Part shown: positions 9,951 to 49,871 of the stretch, in pieces
How the letters are laid out: each line of letters begins with the position of its first letter
How positions within the stretch are numbered: the first letter of the stretch is position 1
Source of the DNA: Anolis carolinensis
Lineage: Eukaryota
Assembly: GCF_035594765.1 (NCBI RefSeq)
Contig: NC_085841.1
Coordinates: 242,130,689-242,194,688 of the forward strand
Reading direction: 5' to 3'
Length of the DNA: 64,000 bases
The notes under the pieces: generated by a model
Told to the model about the DNA's origin: nothing
Database searches by the model: none
What the model saw: only the letters and a program-made list of their open reading frames with translations
Program-made: the position numbers and the translations under genes

Positions 9951-10916
9951 TATGTTGCTCTTGCAGGAGGGAGGTGGAAGCTGTGTTCTCTGGCTTGGTG
10001 GGGGAAAGTAAGCAAACACATAGTTATATATTGTCTATTGCAGGTATCAGAGGGAGAAGGCAAGAGCCTGGTGCACGTCACCTTTGGAAAAACCTCCTGG
10101 CACCCGGGATGTGTGTGTAAAGAAGCCTGTCCTTGGGGATAATCTGGGGCTTTGCTTTCTCTTATAATGTCTTGGGACTTGGGAAGGACTGCCCTAGGTT
10201 TGCCTTCCAAAAAATGACTGGCCAAGGTCCTTTCTTCCTATGGTGGTCTTGGCATCAGGAAGAAATGGAAATCCAGAGAGCGCAGGCCAGGGAGATGGGT
10301 ATTAAAAACCCTTGCTCTTCCCTATTTCTACCCCACCCCCCACCCCACCCCGTCATTTTGGCTCTTTAAAAATCATTGTCACACTTAATCTATAATTAAT
10401 TAATCAATCCTGCATTCCTTTGCAAATTTCTTCTGTTCTGAGAAGAAAGCTGCAAGAAGGGAAGTGTTTGAATCCCGTAAGGAATGGAAAGCTGTGTGGG
10501 TGGGGTTCTTAAAGAATATCAGTTGCAGTAACTTACAGAGCCTCTTGGGATGAGAGCACATGTGCCATTTAACTCTCGGTAAGTGTGCATGACTATCCTC
10601 AGGTTATGATAGGGCAAGTCCTGCAATAACCGTTTCTTGACTAAACAGAAATCCTGCCACTTAAGGATTTCTACCTTCCCTTTTTTCTTCTACTCCTAAG
10701 ACAGGTTAAAACTTGATCTAATCTAATCACTGTCAGTCCTCTGTCTAATTGCAATAATAGTTTCCTGGAAGTTTGTGAATCTGCGAGGGGGTTGCATCAA
10801 AATGTAGGCAAACAATTTCTCTGGTCTGCAAAAATGTGATTTTTAAAAAGAAAACCAACACCCTAACTCTTATTTTTGCAGTTCATATGTGGCAATTCGC
10901 AGCCATCTGAAAGATA

Positions 10917-11145
10917 CTCTGATTCCCCCCAAAATAAGACAGGGTCTTATATTAATATTTATTCCAAAAGATGCTTTAGAGCTTGTTTTCAGGGGCAGTC
11001 TCATTTTTCCAAATTGACTTTTTAAATTAACTACATCTAGGGCTTATTTTTGAAATAGGGCTTATAGTTCAAGCATCCTCAGACATGCTGAAAAATCATG
11101 ACAGTTCTTATTTTTGGAGTAAGTCTTATTTTGGGGGAAACTGGT
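10917..11145. mobile_element. Old pogo/Tigger-type MITE
   Basis: Degenerate TIRs ccccccaaaataagac / gtcttattttggggg; related to 31003-31408. Confidence 0.7.
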
Positions 11146-12427
11146 GACCACCAGTTAATGAAAAAAGTTTTTTTAAATAAACAAGAATAAACCACTACTA
11201 TAAATTTAGAAAGAAACATAACTTTGGGATTAAACATAACTATAATAGGATTAATCTTATTCTGATTGTCTAAGTGTTACTGTATTAACAAGACTTGCAT
11301 TTCCTTTGATGCTATATAAGTACAAGTGCACCAGGATCCAATCCTCCAGAAAGGAATGGGATCAGCATTGTGTTCATATAGTGCTGATATTTCTTTTCAG
11401 TGGGAAAAAACAGTGTTTGGCTTTTGAAGTACTACATAAAGCTCTCAAAGGCAGTGTCAGCCAAATGGCTTGGGATTTGCAGGTCTCTATTTTGTGGGCT
11501 TATCTGCAAATTAACTTTTAAAAAGACAACTTTTTTTTTTGCAAATTTTACATTTTCTAGGTTTTTAGAATTATCCAGGTTGTGTTTTGATATTTCACAC
11601 AGAATGAATGCTCATTCTTCTCTTTAAGCTATTTTCGATTCATGAGTGATGAGGTCTCTCAACTCTGATTTATTTTCAGTTCTTCTTTCATGTTTCATGG
11701 TCACCGGATTCAGATGTTTTCTTGACTGCTTCAAAAGTATTATTGAAAACAGTAGCACTTCACATTTTTTGCAACTACCATCCAACATACTCATTGAATT
11801 CCAGTATTGCCTTGATATCCAAATTCTTCTGTTACTGCTGTGATGTTACACATTTAAGATCTCCCAGCAATTTCAGCATCATTTCAGTAAGAAATGAAGA
11901 AGAACAAACCTACTAATGTGGTTGAGTAAGTCTTAGCTGACCACATTTTTTCACAAGGCACAGATTTGCCCTGATTATTAATTTGAGGATGGAAAGACGC
12001 AATTATTTAAATGTGTCATCATTTATGTGCCTTATATCTTGAGAAAGAGGTCTGTTCACAGAAAAACAAAGGTAGTCATGCTCATGACACAGATTTCCCC
12101 ACAAGGCAGTTAAATTGTGAGTTGCTTCACGTGTGATGTAAACAAAAAAGTCACAGGAACAGAAAGAGACAGGAACAGAAAGAAGTTAGTGACCTCCTGC
12201 ATGCCAATGAAAACAACTAACTTTGTTACAAGTTAGTTTTAGTCAAAAAGAGTATAGGTAAATTAACTAAAACATGGAAAGGAGAATAATGTTAGAAGTC
12301 TAAGAAACATGTTTGTAAAAAAGCATAGAAATTTTGGTTAACAATCAGTACAACGATACAGGAGATTTTGAAAACAGAAATAACATTCAGACAATATAAA
12401 GAAGGGAAAAGGAGATTGTGAATATAA

Positions 12428-12752
12428 AAAGGTAAAAGTTTCCCCTAATATTAAGTCCAGTCATGTCTGACTCGGGGTTGGTGCTCATCTCCATTTCTAA
12501 GCCGAAGAGCCAGCGTTGTCCATAGATACCTCCAAGGTCATGCAGCCGGCATGACTGCATGGAGCGCCATTACCTTCCTGCCAGAGCGGTACCTATTGAT
12601 CTACTCACATTGGCATGTTTTCGAACTGCTAGGTTGGCAGAAGCTGGAGCTAACAGCAGGCGCTCACTCCGTTCCCAGGATTTGAACCTGGGACCTTTTG
12701 GTCTGCAAGTTCAGCAGCTCAGCGCGTTAACACACTTCACCACCAGGGCTCC
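12428..12752 (-). mobile_element. Sauria SINE, full length
   Basis: Same family as 8072-8397; gtgaatata direct repeat on the flanks. Confidence 0.92.
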
Positions 12753-12857
12753 TAATGGTGAATATAGATTATGATATATAAAGAAATACCATATTTTTCG
12801 CTTTATAAGACGCACCTGATGATAAGACGCACCTAGTTTTCAGAGGAGGAAAATGGG

Positions 12858-12947
12858 GATGCCACATTTTTTAAAGGATTTAATAACCGTTTCATCCTTC
12901 ACTAACTGCCATGAAGACTTCACCCACTCGCAGAACTGGGCGATAGT
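12858..12947 (-). pseudogene. pogo-family transposase C-terminal remnant (30 codons)
   Basis: Minus-strand translation [30 protein letters not shown], the W-V-x-x-x-W...KSFKKCGI motif that follows the DDD domain of pogo/POGK-like transposases; not in the ORF track. Confidence 0.85.
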
Positions 12948-12948
12948 T

Positions 12949-13263
12949 CTCCCTGAAGTGGCGGATGACGGCCAGCGTGTCGCGGTGGGTGAGGCTGCTC
13001 ACCGGGGTGCCGTTCACCTCCAGCAAGACGTCCCCTGGCGCCGGGGCTTTCCCCGAGAGCAGGACCGAGCCGGGAGTGCCGCCCGAGGAAGAGGAGGTGG
13101 CGGGCGAAGGCTCGGAGAGGCGGGCGCCGAGGTAAGGGAACTCTCCGCGCTCGGCGCCGCCGTGGAGGAGCTCTGGGTCCGGCCCGCAGCCGCTGCCCCA
13201 GGACACAGCGCACTCCTGCACCTTGCTCAGCCAGTGCCGCTTCCTCCGCAGCGTCTTAGACAT
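12949..13263 (-). pseudogene. MAGI3: Captured MAGI3 exon 1 fragment (N-terminus and most of PDZ0)
   Basis: [22 protein letters not shown]…[12 protein letters not shown]…[36 protein letters not shown] matches the recalled MAGI3 N-terminus; similarity ends abruptly after RHFRE; no further MAGI3 exons recognised in the window. Confidence 0.92.
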
Positions 13264-14559
13264 GAGGCCACACCATGGGCGACCCTCCGCCCGTGAGGAG
13301 GACGAGGAGACGACGGCGGCACCACTCTCCCGAGTACTCAGTCAGTCAGTCACTCGTCCGGCTAGTTCGCCAAGCGCGCACCCCTCTGTTTGCGTGTGCG
13401 CGTGCGTGCGCGCTCTCCCTCTTTCTTTCCTCTCTCTCCTCGCCTCGTGAGGTCATATTGCGTTTATAAGACGCACTGACTTTTCCCCTCTATTTTGGGG
13501 GGGGAAAAAGTGCGTCTTATAAAGCGAAAAATACAGTACATCTTTACATTTACTATCTTTCCTTACAATAAAGTAATCGATGTAGAGAGGAGGACTGTCA
13601 TAAATAATTTAGCATACTGCAGTTAAAGAAGTTAATTTTAATTGGCGTGGGGATAGGAACAATGTTTATTATTTTAGATAGATATTGTTCATTGTTTGGA
13701 GAGTTATTGCCTGTCTATTGTTTCTTGTAATTTCAGCATTGCATCCGACATTAAAATATATAAATAACAATATTTAAACAGAAACATGAAGAAGCAAGTG
13801 ACCTTCTGCATGCTAGCGATAAGAACTAACTTTTCTACTAGTTAGTTCTTTACAAAACCCTCAGGTCAAAATTGATACAGATAAAAGCTCACATTAGTAC
13901 AAATATGTTTAAAAGGTAACACAAAACTAATCTGTCCGTAACATTAAAATCAATTAAGAGCAAACTCATTAAAAAGCAAAAAAGTGAACATTATTAAAAA
14001 GCCCTTAACCCCTTCCCTCTAATTTCCTCATCTTTCATTCATCTCTTCCTGGAAGTAAAGCAAGTAAATATGTTCCAAGTAAATTTGTATGCACTTCAAG
14101 AACAGCCTCCAGGAAGAAAATTAAAAAAAATATTGCAGGAAAACAGGAAGATAACAGGTACTTCCAGATGAAACTCTGCTTTTTGTGTGTGTGCAGTCTT
14201 CCTACAATAAAATTAAAATTTTAAAGATAAAGAAAAATATTAATTAGACACCCCTTTTCTGCCTTTTCCTTTTTGTTCTTTGCTGCTCTACCCACTGGTA
14301 TTACTGCCCCCCAAAATCCTCTGATCAGGACAGTAAGGGAGATTGTGAAAGGATGAGGGCAAGGAAAAACAGAGCTAATCAAAATATTGTTTCTTCATAT
14401 TTGTTCCTTCATACTCAAAATTCCCTGTACATTACTTTAGACTTCATTTTGAAAAAATAAAATCCATAATTTTAACTCAAAAGTCCCACACTTTCTTTTT
14501 TATTAGAACTGCATGCTTAGCAATGAGTAGTGGCATTCTTAAAGAGCATAAATATCCTA

Positions 14560-14760
14560 AAGGCGCCAGATGCTTTCTGATTTTGGAAGCTGTGCAGGTT
14601 AATCCCTATTTAGTACTTGGATGTGAGACCACCAGTAAATGTTAGGTACTGTGGGCTATACTTCATAGAAAGGAACTGACAAAACCACACCTGAGTATTT
14701 GTTGTCTTAAAAGAAATCTGTATGAAATTTATTAGGTCTCCATGAATCAACAAACACACA
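14560..14760 (+). mobile_element. Old 5S rRNA-derived SINE
   Basis: 5S-like head (tctgattttggaagct…tttagtacttggatgtgagaccacc), degenerate. Confidence 0.6.
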
Positions 14761-15188
14761 CAGTAGCATTCTTCCTATAATTCTTTCTTAGTAAAGTGTA
14801 TGCTAAGAATGACTAGAAGTCCTATGTATTTCATATAAAGGTCCTATGTTGGAAGAAAAGTGGATTTTTAATTAAATGCTTCAATATGAATGAATACACA
14901 TTTAAACATACAAATAAAATTATTGCTTGGAAAGAGTGCCATTACTCATCCAATATAAACTAAAACATTAATTTACTATGTACAGGTAAGAATGTAGCTC
15001 ATCTGATTTCTTCATCTTCTGGATTGCATTGTGTAATTCACAAAATTCAAGCCATCTAGTCCAACTGTAGATTTGTCTGTTTTAACCCACAGGTTTTTAT
15101 AATTCATCTGTAAATCCTTGAATTTAATGTAATTGGTTATTAATGTCTGCTTTGGCTTCACACACAGGTTGACTAACAAGAATTTAAG

Positions 15189-16268
15189 ATGGAAGATACC
15201 TGGACATTTGATGGGAATTTGTATGAGCTCTTTGGAAATTATAATTATGTTTATGAAAATACAATCGATCCTAGCGGTGTGTCAGAACCCTGCAGAGCTG
15301 AGGCTGCATCGCCTGTGATCAGGTACTTTGTGGCCTTCCTCTATTGCCTGGTGTGCTTACTCAGCCTGATAGGGAATGCCTTGGTGGTTTTGGTGGTTGC
15401 CTACAACAAACGGAATCGGTCTGTGACTGACGTGTACCTCCTGAACCTAGCCATTGCCGACCTCCTCTTTGCCCTCACCTTGCCCATCTGGGCTGTCTTC
15501 CGTGCTCATGAGTGGATCTTTGGCACTGGCATGTGTAAATTCACTTCTGTCCTGAAGGAAGTCAATTTCTACAGCGGAGTCCTCCTGTTGGCTTTCATCA
15601 GTGTTGATCGCTACCTGGCAATAGTGTATGCTACCCGTCATGCAACTGAAAAGAGGCACTGGGTTAAATTTGTCTGTGTTGGCATCTGGGTGTTCTCTCT
15701 TCTCCTTTCACTGCCTATGATTACCTACCGTGAAGTTTTCTATGCACCTAATTCCTCTTTGAGAGTTTGTTATGAGAATATTGGAGGCAATGAAACATCT
15801 AAATGGAGAGTGGTGCTGAGAATCTTGCCTCAAACATTTGGCTTCCTTGTGCCTTTGGCCATCATGCTTTTTTGCTATGGGGTAACGGTGCATAGACTCT
15901 TTCAAATGAAGAACAATCAAAAAAAGAAAGCTATGAAAGTCATCCTGGTTGTGGTGCTGGTCTTCCTCTTTTGTTGGCTGCCTTACAACATCACCCTATT
16001 TGCTGATACCTTGATGAGGACTGGGGTTATTACTGAGGAGTGTAAACGCCGTGGTATCATTGATGCTGGTCTTTCAGGCACAGAGATCCTGGGGTTTTCT
16101 CACAGCTGTATGAATCCCATCATCTATGCCTTTATAGGGCAGAAGTTCCGGAATAACTTCCTCAAGATCCTGGTTGAGAGAGGCATCATCAGTAAAGAAG
16201 TCCTGATTCGGTATCGGAAAGGCTCTTCCTTCTCATCTACATCTGGCAACACCTCCACAACTCTATAA
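15189..16268 (+). CDS. CXCR2: C-X-C chemokine receptor type 1/2-like (IL-8 receptor), copy A, 359 aa
   Basis: 7-TM class A GPCR; [57 protein letters not shown]-terminal STTL; splice acceptor cacacag| at 15167/15168. CXCR1 versus CXCR2 orthology cannot be resolved. Confidence 0.95.
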
Positions 16269-17166
16269 TGCCCATTCTATGAAGATGGGAAAGGAAAGAA
16301 TAGAGCTGAAGACACTGTCCAGCAAGTGCTTTGAGACTGAGATCAAGATCGTATAATTGAGAAGCTTCATCTTAACCTTAATTTGACATTTGTAATAAAT
16401 CATTGTATAATTTTATGAGCAGCTAAAAATTGTTTTTAAACACCAATAGAAATGAAATATTTTAAGATGTCCATACAAGATTGATATATTTTGTATAAGC
16501 TTTACACGTCACTAAATGTTACACCTTTTAACATTCAGGCAACAAAGGAGGACTTCATATGTTGGATGTTTCCTGTATAGAAAGTGTACCCTTGTAGGGG
16601 ACAGGTGAAATTCTAATGCAGAATACTGTATACTGTATACTGTAGACTGTCACACATCTATCCTTTCTCAATGCTTCTTTATAGCAGGATGTTGTTGTCT
16701 TTTGCTGTTTTTAAGCATGTTAACATGTTATTAGCGGATAAAATGCATCTGTGTAATACCATGCATGAAACCTGCAGATCTTCTTTAAGGTGTTTTCTTT
16801 ATGGAAAGATTTTTTTAAAAAGGGGGTTCCTGAGCCATTTACAGTGCAATCATACATACCCACTAAGAAATACTTCCCTTAGCTAAGTGTACATTCAGGC
16901 AAATAGATATACGAGATAGGCAGCCTGGTTTTTTTTTTTTTTAAGGAAAACTCCTGTGCTTTTACTGAAATTTGTTTGCACAGGAATGTCTGAAGTTAAT
17001 GGGCCAGCTTTCTATGAGATTAATATAGGTAGTTTCAAGATGGGTAGAAAAAGAGATAGATGCATAATTTGCCTTTAGTCATTTTTAACTAGCTATGAGA
17101 AGCCTTGGCTTTGCTAGCTGTGTATCAACTAGTCATACTAGTTGTGCTAGTTCTCAAATTTATGTG

Positions 17167-17169
<3 letters not shown>

Positions 17170-17221
<52 letters not shown>
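17170..17221. repeat. (TA)n microsatellite
   Basis: Direct read. Confidence 0.95.
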
Positions 17222-17227
<6 letters not shown>

Positions 17228-17317
17228 AGCATGAATAGCAGCATGTCTTCTATTACCAAAAAGAAGTGTGATGAGTAGTTTTCTTTTAGCTAGGAATTAT
17301 GTCTGTCAGTACTTTGA

Positions 17318-17578
17318 TTTTTTTTCATATCAGGAGCAACTTGAGAAACTGCAAGTTGCTTCTGGTGTGAGAGAATTGGCCATCTGCAAGGATGTTGCCC
17401 AGAGGACGTCTGGATGTTTTGATGTTTTTACCATCCTTGTGGGAGGGTTCTCTCCTGTCCCTGCATGGGGAGCTGGAGCTGACAGAGAGAACCAGCAACC
17501 TTCAGGTCAACAACCCAGCCTTCAAGTCAGCAATCCTGCCAGCACAAGGGTTTAATCCACTGCTCCACCGGGGGCTCC
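17318..17578 (-). mobile_element. tRNA-derived SINE (third family, probably Vingi-type 3' end)
   Basis: Homologous to 61878-62144; poly-A tail; ACTTTGAT direct repeat on both sides. Confidence 0.8.
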
Positions 17579-17968
17579 ACTTTGATGAAGAAAGTTTAGA
17601 TAATAGAAACAGCTCTTTTGTCCCACATGAACTAATTGTTTTGGTGAATATAGTATCTCTTTGTCTAGCACTTGTTTTTCACACATGTACCAATATTGCT
17701 GCATTGCTGTAGAGATTTTTGACATGAGAAAATTCACTCTCCCATGGTTATATGCATTGCTGTTCAAAATCCAATCAAGGTATGAACTGCAATTCCAATA
17801 AACGTTTATATAGAGGGATCATGTTGATACTTTCAATCATCTATGGTAAAAATGATAATTGTTAATTTTTCATATCATAAAAATGGTCTAGAAAATATTA
17901 TTGGCTTCAAACTGAATTTCAATAATAATCCTATTTGCATAAAATGGAGTGATATAGGATAACCAGTA

Positions 17969-18311
17969 CAGTAGAGTCTCGCTTATCCAAGCTCCACTTA
18001 TCCAAGGTGCTGTATTATCCAACATAGTTTGCCTTTTAGTAGTAAATGTTTTTGTAGTCAATTTTTCAATAAATTGCAAAATTTTGGTGCTAAATTCATA
18101 AATACAATAATTATTACATAACGTTATCGTGTACTGAACTGCTTTTTCTATCCATTTGTTGTAAAGCATGATGTTTTGGTGCTTAATTTGTAAAATCATA
18201 GCATAATTTGATGTTTAATAGGCATTTCCTTAATCCCTCCTTATTATTCAACATTTTCGCTTATACAATGTTCTGCCAGCCCGTTTATGTTGGATAAGTG
18301 AGACTCTACTG
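17969..18311. mobile_element. Tc1/Mariner-superfamily MITE (CAGTAGAGTCTC TIR)
   Basis: TIRs and TA duplication. Confidence 0.92.
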
Positions 18312-18667
18312 TACTTTCAATTATATCAAATCAATTGAAGTGGAAGAATATTTAAGTAAAGCAACAAGCATTTTGATTCATAGTACTGTGGATGAAAGGC
18401 TTAAGTATCCTAAAGGTACCATATGTGAAGTCTTGGCTCTGCCTTTTACTCTCCTTTGCTTTTGTTCCCCCTGTTTATAGGTTTTCCCAATAGTGTAGCT
18501 ACCTCATTTTGTATTAGTTTTGGGTGGAGCATATAATCCCCCTAGAGGCCAGCCTTAGTTGGTCTATTCCATTTGCCTGTATAGAGCTCCTTTGCTAGAC
18601 TCCTCCTTTTTTCTGCAGTAGAGCTACAGAGACTTGAGGCCTGATCATTGTCTGTAGTATTCATATA

Positions 18668-18986
18668 CAGTAGAGTCTCACTTATCCAAGCTAAATGGGC
18701 CAGCAGGAGCTTGGATAAGCGAATATCTTGGACAATAAGGAGGGATTAAGGAAAAGCCTATTAAACATCAAATTAGGTTATGATTTTACAAATTAAGCAC
18801 CAAAACATCATGTTATACAACAAATTTGACAGAAAAATACAATACGCAGTAATGTTATGTTATAATTACTGCATTTACGAATTTAGCACCAAAATATCAC
18901 GATATATTGAAAACATTGACTATAAAAATGGCTTGGATTATCCAGAGGCTTGGATAAGCGAGGCTTGGATTAGTGAGACTCTACTG
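18668..18986. mobile_element. Tc1/Mariner-superfamily MITE, opposite orientation to 17969-18311
   Basis: TIRs and TA duplication. Confidence 0.92.
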
Positions 18987-20660
18987 TACCACCAGTCCCA
19001 AAGACAACAGAAGCTTTTGGTCAGCCTAAGTTTCACAAAGAAGATCGAGACATCTTTATAAGTACCAGCATGTAAACCATAGCTTTGCATCAGAGGCAAA
19101 AGACTTTAAAAAATCCCAGAGAGATGACTGCAACCAGCAAAATCTCCCTTCGTAATGTATTGTTTTAATCTATCTTTCAATAGCCCCAGAAGGATTTAAC
19201 CCTTTATTCATCTTGTTTTCAGTAAACTCATTTGGTTATCTTTTCTCCTTGCTTGAAGTGCCTCTGTATGTTAGGGGTCTTGATTTTAACAGAAGGTATA
19301 CAGTAAAGACAGACATTATAGTTTTCCCAAAGGCTTGGGAAAACACCATATCTCATCTAATCTTGGAAGCTAAGTGGTGTCAGCCCTGGTTTGTACTCGG
19401 ATGGAGGACCACCAAGAGAATAAGAGATATGGTTCTGTTTTATAGGAAAAAAACCTCAGAGACAAGATTTGGTTTTATATCCATTCTCCCCTGCCCCCTC
19501 CCCTTTCATAGCATTCCCTGAGCTATGTTTGGCTGACACTATCCGTGCTTGCTAGCTTTTACCAGGCTTTCCCAACTTCACACTTCAAACTAGCCTACTT
19601 GCTGCTGGGCAAAACGTACATGCAGAGTAATTTGCACACAACCCTGTCTTCTGGTTTGGAGAAACAAGGCTCTAAAATTTCCCCATTGATGCCAATGGAC
19701 CGAATCTTACTGGAACAAAAACGGCATCTCCCTCCAGATTTCAGGAATTTTCCGGAAACCAGAATGGGGGGGGGGGGGGGAGCCAAAAATGGAACTGAAA
19801 ATAGCATGCTTTTTGCACATTGTGCACACTCCTATTAGCAAGCAGGAGACTTTACATGTAAACAGCCACTGCTAACTACAGCCCACTACACTGTATAGTC
19901 TTGAAGACATTTAGAAATGATGAGGCTGGCAGATCATAGGCTTTCTAAAGCAAACATGTCTTACCTACATATTGGGCAAGAACTGTGCCCCTACTTCCTC
20001 TTACATGAAGAGCAAAACAAATGGTCTGTTGGTGAAGATTTCTACATAACTGTAAAGTGTGAGCTGTTTCACACATGACATTTAACCTGCACTGACGTAT
20101 CCTCTTTGCAGGAACAAACAAACAAACACCCTATCATCCCATGTATTAAGACTTTAGAGTTTTTGGTCCAGAAATGTTTAACATCATTTTTAATAGCCCT
20201 TGAAGAAGGTCTGAAAAGTATTCACAGGACAAAATGTGTCTGTTTTTTTTAACCCAATGAAGCAACCATCTTTTGAACATCTTGAAGTGTGTCTAATTAC
20301 TTTTGCAGACTTCCTTACATGCTTCCCAGTTTCTGTTTTCCAAGAGCATGGAAAGCCTTATGGGTCAAATAGAATGACGTGGCATGCCAGATTTGATCTG
20401 TGGTCCTTGAATGGGTGGTATAAGGTGTACACAAATAGACATTTCACTTCATATATTCTGAAAAAATTGAAATCGAAGAAAGTAAAGTTGCCTTAATAAT
20501 CAATATTACTCAACTAATAACACCTCTTATGCAAAGATTCAATTTTTGTGGGAGTCTGTTCAGTATGAGCATTCCATACATGTACATCAGTGAGTGACTG
20601 CAATGGAAAAAAGTACAGGAAATCAATAATTACACACTGCAGCCTATAAATCTATGTATC

Positions 20661-20872
20661 TCAGGAAAGCTTGGAGAAGAGAATGATACTGGGGAAAATG
20701 GAAGGAAAAAGGAAGAGGGTTAGGGTTAGGGTTAGGGCAAGATGGATGGATGGCATCCTTGAAATGACTGGCTTGACCTTGAAGGAACTGAGGGTGGCCA
20801 CGGCCGACAGGAAACTATGGTCCATGAGGTCACGAAGAGTCGGAAGCATCTGAACGAATAAACAACAACAAT
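20661..20872 (+). mobile_element. RTE/BovB-type LINE 3' fragment
   Basis: Translation EKRMILGKMEGKRKR…RWMDGILE; ends gtcacgaagagtcggaa…aacgaataa(aca)n. Confidence 0.85.
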
Positions 20873-22717
20873 CTCCCAGAATTATTTTTAAAAGTACAAC
20901 ATCACATACAAGTAACTTTAAAAAATACACCGTGGGTTGCATGAATGTCTGGCCAAGGATGTAATAAAATAATACCATCTTGCAGCTGGTGAACACTGGG
21001 GCTTGTACACTCCTGTGTGAATGCAGCTGGAGCACAAATCTTTACCAATGTTCTGTTGGACATCCCCTTTTGCGTGCCCACACCATGCAACATCAGCTGA
21101 TAGTACTATATATGTACTTCTGGGTACCATCCAGCTAAATTGTCCTCCTGGAGCTTCAAGGAGGAAAAGCACCCCCCCTTCCCCAGATAACAAAACTGGT
21201 TGGATTGTGCCTGTGATCTCTCCTGTCCATACTGACTACTAAGAGACCAGTCTCATGTCATCTGTTGAGACTACAGAGGGAAAGGTTGTTGTACAAGGAA
21301 GTTTGGGATACTTCTGTTGGCAACCATTTTAAATTAGCATGCACGACATCATAGGCTAGGGTATGGCACCAACACAATGATAGCTTTGAGTCTTACATTA
21401 CCAAATATTCATTCATTCATCCATCCATCCATTCATTACTAAAATATTTCTTGCTGTTACATGCCTTCAAGTCGTTATCAACTTATGACGCTCCTAAGGT
21501 GCTTCTTGGAAATATGCCGAGAGCCCATTCTGTTTGTGAAGATAATTCTGATGTTTTTGTTCCTCCTGGCTTTTTCAGTACTCTTTCTTACCCTGGATGG
21601 CTACAAAGATTTGGGATGTGATCTCTGATTGACTAGACTCATTCATATAAAGAATCCAGGATACATTATTCACAATCTGAATGGGCTTTGTTTTATTCCA
21701 GATATGTTGGCAAATTTTCATATCCAGTTGGTTATATGCTAGTATCCTATTAGCTGACCTCTGGTAAGAAGAGCAAAGAAACTATAACTAGAAATAAAAT
21801 AGCAGTAGGAGATAATGAAAACAATTCAATAATTAATTGAAATATGGCCTTCCATACCAGTAATCTTTTTATTTTTAGGTATTGCTTCTGGAAGCGCTAT
21901 TTTGAAACTAGACACTGGCACTGAATAATAGTTAATTTAATCATGTTCTCTAATTTGAAAACCAGATAATCCTAGATTTTTGTTAAGAGTGATAGACAAT
22001 ATCTTTACTATAAAGTTACATCACTATTTATACGACTGTAGCTGACATGTTTCCATCTTGCAGAATCTTGGGGTTAATTGCTTGGCATGAGAAATTGGTA
22101 TCATACATATTACTACTACTACTAATAATAATGATAATAATTTTATTTTTCTATCCCGCCTCCATCTCCCCACAGGGACTTGGGGTGGCTTACACAGCGC
22201 CAAGCCCAAGAGCAGATAATAGGCAAAATAAAATACATGTAAAAACTTAACCAGATAAAACACATTAAAAACAAATAATATAATATAATAACATTAAAAA
22301 CCAATTTAAAACATAGGATAATAACACAGAAGGACCACCATTTAGAAAAAGTGGAATAAAATACTTACCTCTTGTCTACCTTTCTCTAAAGACACTAATT
22401 GTGATTATCAATTTCACTCAACCCAATAGAAATAGCTGCCCTTCCTTTCCTTGATTGTCAATTTTACCAAATGCTCTCCTGTATCTTTAATAGCCTGAGG
22501 ATGTACAGTAACTATAAGATATTAGAGGTGAAGGCAATTGTACTGATGACCATTATTTTGTAGAGATTCTGACTTAACAAGAACCATAGCATATGTTTAT
22601 ACATTTCTCCCCCCAAAAAGTCATTTTTACCATAGAAGGGAAAAATCAAGAGGCTCAATAAATCCTCCATACTCTGGACAGTGTGTCATGATTACCATGA
22701 CAAAAGGTAATTCAGTT

Positions 22718-25067: not shown

Positions 25068-26147
25068 ATGGGTGATGTCCTGACCTTTGATGGGGATATT
25101 ACTGAATTATTTGACTATTTAAATTACTCTTACGAGTCCACACTCAACCCTGACAGTGCACCAGGACCCTGCCGACCTAAAAGTGCATCAGCTCTGATCA
25201 GATACTTTGTGGCATTCCTCTATTGCTTGGTATGCTTATTCAGCCTGGTAGGAAATGCCTTGGTGGTTCTGGTGGTCACCTACAACAAAGGAAACAGGCC
25301 TGTGACTGATGTGTACCTCCTAAACCTAGCCATTGCAGATCTAATCTTTGCCCTCACCTTGCCCATCTGGGCTATTTTCCGAGCTCATGAATGGATCTTT
25401 GGAACTGCCATGTGTAAAATCATCTCAGCCATGAAGGAAGTCAATTTCTACAGTGGAATCCTCTTGTTGGCTTTCATCAGCATTGACCGCTACTTGGCAA
25501 TAGTGTATGCTACCCATCATGTTACTGAAAAGAGACACTGGGTCAAATTTGTCTGTGTTGGCATCTGGGTGTTCTCCCTCCTCCTTTCATTGCCTATGAT
25601 TACCTACCGTGAAGTTGTCCATGCACCTAATTCTGCTCAGATGGTTTGTTATGAGAATATTGGAGGGAATGAAACAACTAAATGGAGAGTGGTGCTGAGA
25701 ATCCTGCCTCAAACCTTTGGCTTCCTTGTGCCTTTGGCCGTCATGCTTTTTTGCTATGGGGTGACAGTGCATAGACTTTTCCAGATGAAGAATAATCAGA
25801 AAAAGAAAGCTATGAAAGTCATCCTGGTTGTGGTGCTGGTCTTCCTCTTTTGTTGGCTACCTTACAATATCTCCCTACTTATTGATACCTTGATGAGGAC
25901 CAGAGTCATTGCTGAGACCTGTGGACTCCAGGATGCCATTGATGCTGCCCTTTTAGGCACAGAGATCCTGGGGTTTTCTCACAGCTGTATGAACCCCATC
26001 ATCTATGCCTTTATAGGGCAGAAGTTCCGAAACAACTTCCTCAAGATCCTAGTCACACGAGGCATCATCAGTAAAGAAGTCCTGATTCGTTACCGGAAGG
26101 GCTCGACCTTCTCATCTACATCTGGCAATACCTCAACAACACTATAA
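25068..26147 (+). CDS. CXCR1: C-X-C chemokine receptor type 1/2-like (IL-8 receptor), copy B, 359 aa
   Basis: Same motifs as copy A, intact ORF, acceptor ctacacag| at 25051/25052, C-terminal STTL. Symbol is nominal; the two copies look like lineage-level paralogues. Confidence 0.93.
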
Positions 26148-48752: not shown

Positions 48753-49871
48753 GTGTTGCTGTCAACCATGAAAATGAATACAATCTGGCTCCAAGTATTC
48801 AAAAACACTAAAATCTGAATATATAAAAATTAATGTGGTATAATAAAACAGAACAATACAATCTCTAAAATCAGAACACTAAATAAAGAACAACACTCTG
48901 AAAACAGGGGAATTCCACACAGGAAACAATCAGGGCCAGCTAACACCTCCCAACAAAATATTCCCATCATCAAAGTCTGGCAAATCCTTTGTTTTCTCAG
49001 GGCCACAGACTGTAGAAGCACATAAAATATCGCAAACAACACCACTCTGAAAACAAGGGAATTCCAGACAGGAAACAATCAGGGCCAGCTAACACATCCC
49101 AACAAAAAATTTACTCGGGGAGGAAACAGCCAGGTTTTAAAGCTGCAAGGCCATTACATCCTAATCATTTTTCCTAATTGCAGCATTCATACTTTCCTCC
49201 AACAGACAAAAAAAAAGTAATCAGAAATATTGTATATTCACAACCTTTAGGAAATAACATCCCCTGATGGCGCAGCGTGTTAAAGCGCTGAGCTGCTGAA
49301 CTTCTGGACCGAAAGGTTTGAATTGGGGGAGCGGAGAGAGCCCCTACTGTTAGCCCCAGCTTCTGCCAACCCAGAAGTTCGAAAACATGCAAATGTGAGT
49401 GCATCAATAGGTACTGCTCCGGCGGGAAGGTAACGCCGCTCCATGCAGTCATCCCACATGACCTTGGAGGAGTCTACAGATAATGCCGGCTCTTCGGCTT
49501 AGAAATGGAGATGAGCACCAACTCCCAGTCGAACATGACTGGACTCAGGGGAAAACCTTTACCCTTTACCTTAACTACCACCAATTCCTCAATACTTTAT
49601 TTCCCATACCACCAGACTTCGCCACAGCAANNNNNNNNNNNNNNNNNNNNNNNNNNNNNNNNNNNNNNNNNNNNNNNNNNNNNNNNNNNNNNNNNNNNNN
49701 NNNNNNNNNNNNNNNNNNNNNNNNNNNNNNNNNNNNNNNNNNNNNNNNNNNNNNNNNNNNNNNNNNNNNNNNNNNNNNNNNNNNNNNNNNNNNNNNNNNN
49801 NNAGACACTGCAGATATAAGTAGGTTTTATGGCTCTACCAGGCATATTCCAAATAATTGTGTGAATTGAGT

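Follow-up and report, generated by a model that had tools for sequence, protein, structure and literature searches.

How did the first coding exon of a host gene, MAGI3, come to lie between the ends of a small DNA transposon, and has it moved together with that transposon? The question is raised by a 748-bp element at positions 12789-13536 of a 64,000-nucleotide stretch of Anolis carolinensis DNA (the whole stretch analysed, hereafter the window), corresponding to about 242,143,477-242,144,224 on CM069367.1 of assembly GCA_035594765.1.

Structure of the element and its Passer ends

The original prediction of a complete 748-bp element with 27-bp terminal inverted repeats (TIRs) and a TA duplication proved exact in its coordinates. 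The two TIRs are identical at 25 of 27 positions and perfect over the inner 24 bp, and this 24-mer occurs twice in the whole window and not once in 100 shuffles. The TIR core motif is repeated a short way inward from each end, and a TA pair brackets the element (Table 1). The element is located 1.65 kb upstream of a CXCR1/2-like receptor ORF, which is on the opposite strand, and a sequence that we take to be a SINE lies about 35 bp away. The receptor ORF, at 15189, clusters with A. carolinensis G1K910, and the locus retrieved for it is 100% identical to the window over 10189-21268. The only run of Ns in the window is at 49631-49802.

Table 1. Features of the MAGI3-carrying element in window coordinates
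Feature	Positions	Strand	Basis
TA target-site duplication, left copy	12787..12788	.	single TA at the empty site, run X11
TIR, 3′ end of the element, 27 bp	12789..12815	-	25/27 versus the published Anca-PasserC TIR
Passer 3′ subterminal sequence, with second TIR core motif at 12821-12832	12816..12859	-	by-eye comparison with Anca-PasserC
Passer transposase remnant, 30 codons near the C-terminus	12858..12947	-	translation; 12858-12907 matches Anca-PasserC
Captured MAGI3 codons 1-105: basic N-terminus and most of PDZ0	12949..13263	-	101/105 residues versus anole MAGI3
Captured MAGI3 5′ UTR	13264..13293	-	detectable homology, skink and snake MAGI3
GC-rich stretch holding the 5′ junction	13294..13453	-	conserved upstream block of squamate MAGI3 not matched
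Passer 5′ subterminal sequence, with inverted TIR core motif at 13463-13477	13454..13509	-	motif scan, read contigs
TIR, 5′ end of the element, 27 bp	13510..13536	-	TIR alignment
TA target-site duplication, right copy	13537..13538	.	TA pair; single TA at the empty site, run X11

An 80-bp direct repeat (12169-12248 and 13778-13857; 78% identical) lies on either side of the element and the presumed SINE. The window also contains two CXCR1/2-like single-exon ORFs, at 15189-16268 and 25068-26147, which are 86% identical in DNA; no homology was detectable in their upstream 3.7 kb. We also considered, and rejected, that the region preceding the second CXCR gene might hold a paralogous empty site, the homology being confined to the coding exon and SINEs.

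Elements of the Passer family (pogo superfamily) are recognised by a TA duplication, TIRs of less than 30 bp starting with CCGTA and a DD35D transposase. In passages of Gao et al. 2020 (PMC7386202) and Wang et al. 2023 (PMC9976928), Anca-PasserC-lizards is listed as an autonomous Passer of 1849 bp, with a 422-aa DD35D transposase and 3 copies. The TIRs of our element, including those of the second copy described below, match the Anca-PasserC TIR at 25-26 of 27 positions; the CCGTA start is present at the 5′ end of the second copy, and the remaining ends of the two copies are CpG-decayed forms of it. In a by-eye comparison with the 3′ end of Anca-PasserC, the first 70 bp of the window element agree, about 275 bp are absent, and the match resumes in transposase codons. 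The absent segment, which comprises the last 43 codons, the stop and most of the 3′ UTR and shows a 2-bp microhomology, is missing from both copies. Translation of 12947-12858 gives a pogo-type C-terminal stretch, and contigs of 1.4-1.5 kb in runs X11 and X16 terminate on this transposase remnant (12874-12947). The catalytic triad is deleted from the element; the remnant and the 3′ end match Anca-PasserC, which is listed as DD35D. Pfam returned nothing relevant for the remnant (35 aa), Atlas gave only a weak DDE_1 lead for it, and a TIR pattern scan of metagenome and viral contigs produced 0 matches. At the sequence level, assignment of the element ends and the transposase remnant to Anca-PasserC is supported, and the TIR and the deposited 3′ end thereby narrow the earlier, broader call of a pogo-type transposon.

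The element ends (12789-12859 and 13454-13536) are also matched by many contigs in all four runs, which diverge at 12859 or 13453, pointing to numerous further Passer derivatives.

The MAGI3 cargo and its second copy

On the minus strand, an ORF begins at the ATG at 13263, and its codons 1-105 reach 12949. In a protein-level comparison, 101 of these 105 residues are identical to A. carolinensis MAGI3 (XP_016848909.2). This bears out the 105 uninterrupted MAGI3 codons of the prediction, which had made the capture depend on a match to the species' own MAGI3 exon 1. The parent gene encodes 1484 aa and spans 210 kb on a 257-Mb contig that carries neither copy of the element; MAGI3 is on another chromosome and, as anticipated from mammals, unlinked to this locus. 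The coding cargo has a GC content of 71% and a CpG o/e of 0.86, compared with 40% and 0.25 in the window, and the host cargo between the 5′ and 3′ parts of Passer amounts to 345-420 bp. The description of the cargo as exon 1 holds for codons 1-105, but the last 10 codons of the exon and the splice donor are absent from the window copy. By the established topology of PDZ domains, this copy ends short of the last PDZ0 strand.

Past MAGI3, the ORF extends for 18 further codons through transposon sequence read in a different frame. An in-frame MAGI3-transposase fusion was considered and rejected: the reading frames of the transposase remnant and the MAGI3 ORF are offset by one base, and therefore there is no fusion protein. 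In a serine-rich insert, the cargo has the same version as A. carolinensis MAGI3, and a second Anolis species (presumably A. sagrei, from the accessions) shows an indel difference. Since the version is shared with A. carolinensis, the capture is later than the split from the second species. The TIR motif is absent at the skink and cobra MAGI3 loci.

The 5′ junction is placed between about 13293 and 13388, because homology to the skink and snake MAGI3 loci begins only at 13293, some 30 bp ahead of the ATG, and contigs of X11 and X16 match the 5′ part of the element down to 13388 and 13369, respectively, and then end or diverge. The sequence at 13369-13453 is probably Passer 5′ sequence, and that at 13294-13368 may be anole MAGI3 5′ UTR. 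Skink and cobra share a conserved block further upstream of MAGI3 (score 100, against a maximum of 52 in shuffles); the element lacks it, with scores of 24-28 that lie within the shuffled range. The MAGI3 promoter was probably left out of the capture, as judged from the loci of other species, from which the anole parent may have diverged. The cargo originally delimited as 12949-13455 was too wide, MAGI3 homology being detectable only from about 13293. It had further been proposed that a piece of the MAGI3 CpG island was acquired at the DNA level. Unspliced sequence was indeed captured, as seen in the second copy, but the size of the piece was overstated and the conserved promoter is not part of it.

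A homologue search gave two short anole proteins, and both known copies (n=2) were reached via such protein annotation. The second copy (L001:9729-10615, on CM069368.1) is 887 bp long and 95% identical to the window copy. It lies inside a TIMM29 intron, adjoining YIPF2, on a third chromosome, with the same TIRs as the window copy, its own TA pair, and flanks unrelated to those in the window. It contains the complete exon, a GT donor and intron-start bases matching the cobra intron start, followed by 75 bp of a common repeat and then the transposase remnant. Because the donor and the intron start are kept, the cargo must have been captured unspliced. A second homologue search with the L001 ORF revealed no more anole copies among annotated ORFs of similar length, the only ones visible to it.

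The two copies have a common 5′ part, which runs colinearly between TIR and ATG, and they lack the same Passer 3′ segment; their 3′ cargo junctions are unlike. The window copy has an additional 17 bp of transposase and the L001 copy an additional 156 bp of cargo. Since each holds sequence missing from the other, neither copy gave rise to the other, and both must go back to a longer form. The one 5′ part and the one internal deletion common to both argue for a single capture followed by transposition. G90S, present in both copies, was rejected as strong evidence of common descent, being a CpG transition. The predicted multi-copy state and movement after capture are thus borne out by two TA-flanked copies at distinct target sites on different chromosomes, together with the empty site described below.

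Both copies have been annotated as protein-coding. A0A803TN99 is the Ensembl model of the window locus, with a second exon at 12125-12006, and skips 11 residues; XP_062827468.1 is the annotated protein of the L001 copy. The annotated regions (window 12006-13263 and L001:10001-10384) look like homology-driven models on transposon cargo, and the two database proteins should be read as such cargo, not as MAGI3 paralogues. In the TIMM29 intron, the second copy is immediately preceded by a cluster of small TA-type inverted-repeat elements (L001:7068-9489). In the window, a GC-rich, promoter-like region at 2060-2500 adjoins a piece (2459-2489) of the repeat found inside the L001 copy.

The empty site and the origin of the cargo

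In run X11, which has a different organism label and a flank about 1.3% diverged, a contig joins 12788 to 13540. The site has one TA, no element, no excision footprint and one substituted base; this evidence concerns the window copy only and comes from one contig with 34 letters on its short side. The empty TA site sought in related species is therefore present in X11, where the orthologous position is empty and not occupied by a cargo-free Passer. Misassembly had been named as an objection to the capture. It can be dismissed because an independent sample, run X1, has contigs over the left end (12709-12814) and the cargo-transposase junction (12843-12978) that show no differences. Run X16, which carries the same organism label as X1, has no such junction contig (word share 0.39, versus 0.40 for X11). 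This hints at a presence/absence polymorphism of the window insertion, although gaps in these contig data carry no proof. Locus L005 comes from the same assembly as the window and is not independent support. Contig depths were not taken as copy numbers, and X1 contig 6 (13037-13433) was left unassigned to parent or copy, as contigs may be mosaics.

We consider it likely that the element arose by one template-switch capture into a broken Passer copy, followed by transposition in trans and then by separate deletions. The middle of an Anca-PasserC copy would have been lost, and genomic MAGI3 sequence taken up in a single event, comprising the last part of the 5′ UTR, exon 1 and the beginning of intron 1 and reading in the same direction as the transposase. 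The polymerase may have switched template while a break within or next to the element was being repaired, either in gap repair after excision or by fork switching. Passer transposase, presumably that of Anca-PasserC, could then have moved the product, which had both TIRs, in trans to two or more TA sites on chromosomes other than that of MAGI3, and internal deletions arising separately would have shortened it to 748 bp in one copy and 887 bp in the other. We see no microhomology where 12948 meets 12949, and this junction may stem from a later deletion. Outside its CpG island, the cargo would become methylated and decay.

Composite mobilisation, known for plant Pack-TYPE elements (PMC8903248), would yield the same order of parts: Passer insertions just upstream of the MAGI3 start codon and in intron 1 would have moved together with the exon between them, their inner ends being lost later. 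A longer progenitor and later deletions are required anyway. However, one Passer would have to have inserted no more than about 100 bp from the start codon of a conserved gene, and each copy would have to have lost its two inner TIRs precisely; no inner TIR remnant was seen, and we regard this scheme as unlikely. The cargo is sense-oriented and begins downstream of the conserved promoter block, as if copied from unspliced nascent MAGI3 RNA during repair and then transposed. Yet it has no poly(A) and no exon 2, it retains the intron start, and DNA templates are the published norm for Pack-TIRs (PMC8277862), which makes an RNA template quite unlikely. The different 3′ junctions would also fit two independent, transposition-independent gap-filling captures into Passer relics resident at each site, the usual single-copy Pack-TIR route and the commonest in animals (PMC8277862); the shared G90S lies at a CpG and could be recurrent. 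Given the same colinear 5′ sequence and the same Passer deletion in both copies, and an X11 site that is empty rather than holding a cargo-free Passer, such a double origin is highly improbable. One assembly supplies both copies, but an assembly artefact or a segmental duplication is next to impossible: the X1 contigs cross both junctions exactly, evidence that would lose its weight only were X1 the animal that was assembled, and the older Ensembl model A0A803TN99, which maps here too, speaks against an artefact even then; moreover, the flanks of the two copies are unrelated.

The two copies differ at 23 of 150 CpG sites and at 12 of 580 others (15% versus 2%, p = 3e-9), and this concentration at CpG is the pattern of germline methylation. 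Among the coding differences, 7 of 15 are non-synonymous, while 59% are expected for CpG transitions (p about 0.3, with little power). Overall, the copies look neutral and decaying, with no signal of selection. The terminal CpG is decayed in both window TIRs, which may lower their mobility. With the same mechanism, one copy might now serve the host as a young gene or exon, for instance by encoding a short PDZ0 protein or by contributing to a MAGI3-TIMM29 chimera. The ORFs are open in both copies and annotated as coding by RefSeq and Ensembl. The MAGI3 donor in L001 is of phase 1 and in sense orientation, and TIMM29 exon 2, whose acceptor is also of phase 1, follows about 815 bp downstream (L001:10344-11160), so that an in-frame chimeric splice is possible on paper; with phases read exon by exon, the match is roughly a one-in-six coincidence. 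Against a function stand the missing selection signal, the altered conserved residues (G90S in both copies, G40R in L001) and the loss of the last PDZ strand in the window copy. In the single RNA-like run the cargo is covered by no contig, which says little about expression given the human filter. We find a functional copy very unlikely. A broader speculation is that a small, recently active family spreads a module of start codon and donor, possibly behind a Passer promoter, and that the TIMM29-intron insertion is spliced in frame into a MAGI3-PDZ0/TIMM29 chimera still segregating in populations. This is distinctly improbable; if true, it would represent exon shuffling by a pogo transposon in an amniote.

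Comparison with known gene-capturing elements

Tan et al. 2021 reported 370 Pack-TIRs in 100 animal genomes, 115 of them on TcMariner-class elements; only four were multicopy (three frog, one alligator), and none was found in anoCar2 (PMC8277862). A Pack-TIR is defined by an internal segment of 100-5000 bp enclosed by the two ends of a single TIR element, with a parent of at least 90% identity that is not flanked by the same transposon, spliced retrocopies being excluded. Here, the internal cargo is 345-420 bp long, the parent matches at 101/105 residues at the protein level, and the donor and intron start are kept in L001. With the same cargo at two distinct target sites and an empty orthologous site for the window copy, the element is best described as a multicopy Pack-TIR. 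Gene capture by a TIR element is a known kind of event, and the novelty first claimed for a vertebrate capture was overstated, since vertebrate Pack-TIRs, multicopy ones included, have been published (PMC8277862). Mobile multi-copy cases are nonetheless rare in vertebrates: four families in the 100-genome screen, none of them squamate. The few TIR elements annotated in the anole (77 in the screen of Tan et al.) suggest why Pack elements were missed there. Our literature search returned no paper linking MAGI3 to a lizard transposon and none on a Pack-TIR in Anolis. This element combines a coding cargo and an empty site with a named autonomous partner and two copies that carry different deletions, and so offers a clean test of gene capture by TIR elements, be it by gap repair, fork switching or composite mobilisation. 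According to passages of PMC9976928, Passer is under development as a gene-delivery tool.

The element resembles Anca-PasserC, as described in passages of PMC7386202 and PMC9976928, in its TIR, TA duplication, 3′ subterminal sequence and C-terminal transposase codons. It differs in being non-autonomous and in having host DNA in place of nearly all the transposase; a cargo-bearing Passer form is not described in those passages. The composite hAT/hobo and TcMar-N elements of A. carolinensis (Novick et al., PMC3014272) are found in the same genome, are likewise non-autonomous and have taken up extraneous DNA. However, their described cargo is mostly other transposons, the Passer TIR is not among the 17 TcMar-N families, and MAGI is not mentioned by Novick et al.

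The closest parallels are the multicopy Pack-TIRs, such as Pack-hAT-N8_XT with the CAPSL 5′ UTR in Xenopus tropicalis and Ssk-FB4 in Drosophila (PMC8277862). These share with the anole element the host DNA between the ends of one TIR element, an interchromosomal parent, several insertion sites, a GC-rich cargo from the 5′ end of a gene, and secondary deletions. In contrast, the anole carrier belongs to Passer/pogo and its autonomous partner is known from the same genome, and the cargo has a start codon, a coding exon and, in L001, a splice donor; evidence of expression and selection exists for Ssk-FB4 and not for the anole element. Plant Pack-MULEs and Pack-Mariner (PMC8903248) are also non-autonomous TIR elements that spread gene fragments at low copy number, whereas the anole case involves a vertebrate host, one demonstrated donor gene and another transposon family.
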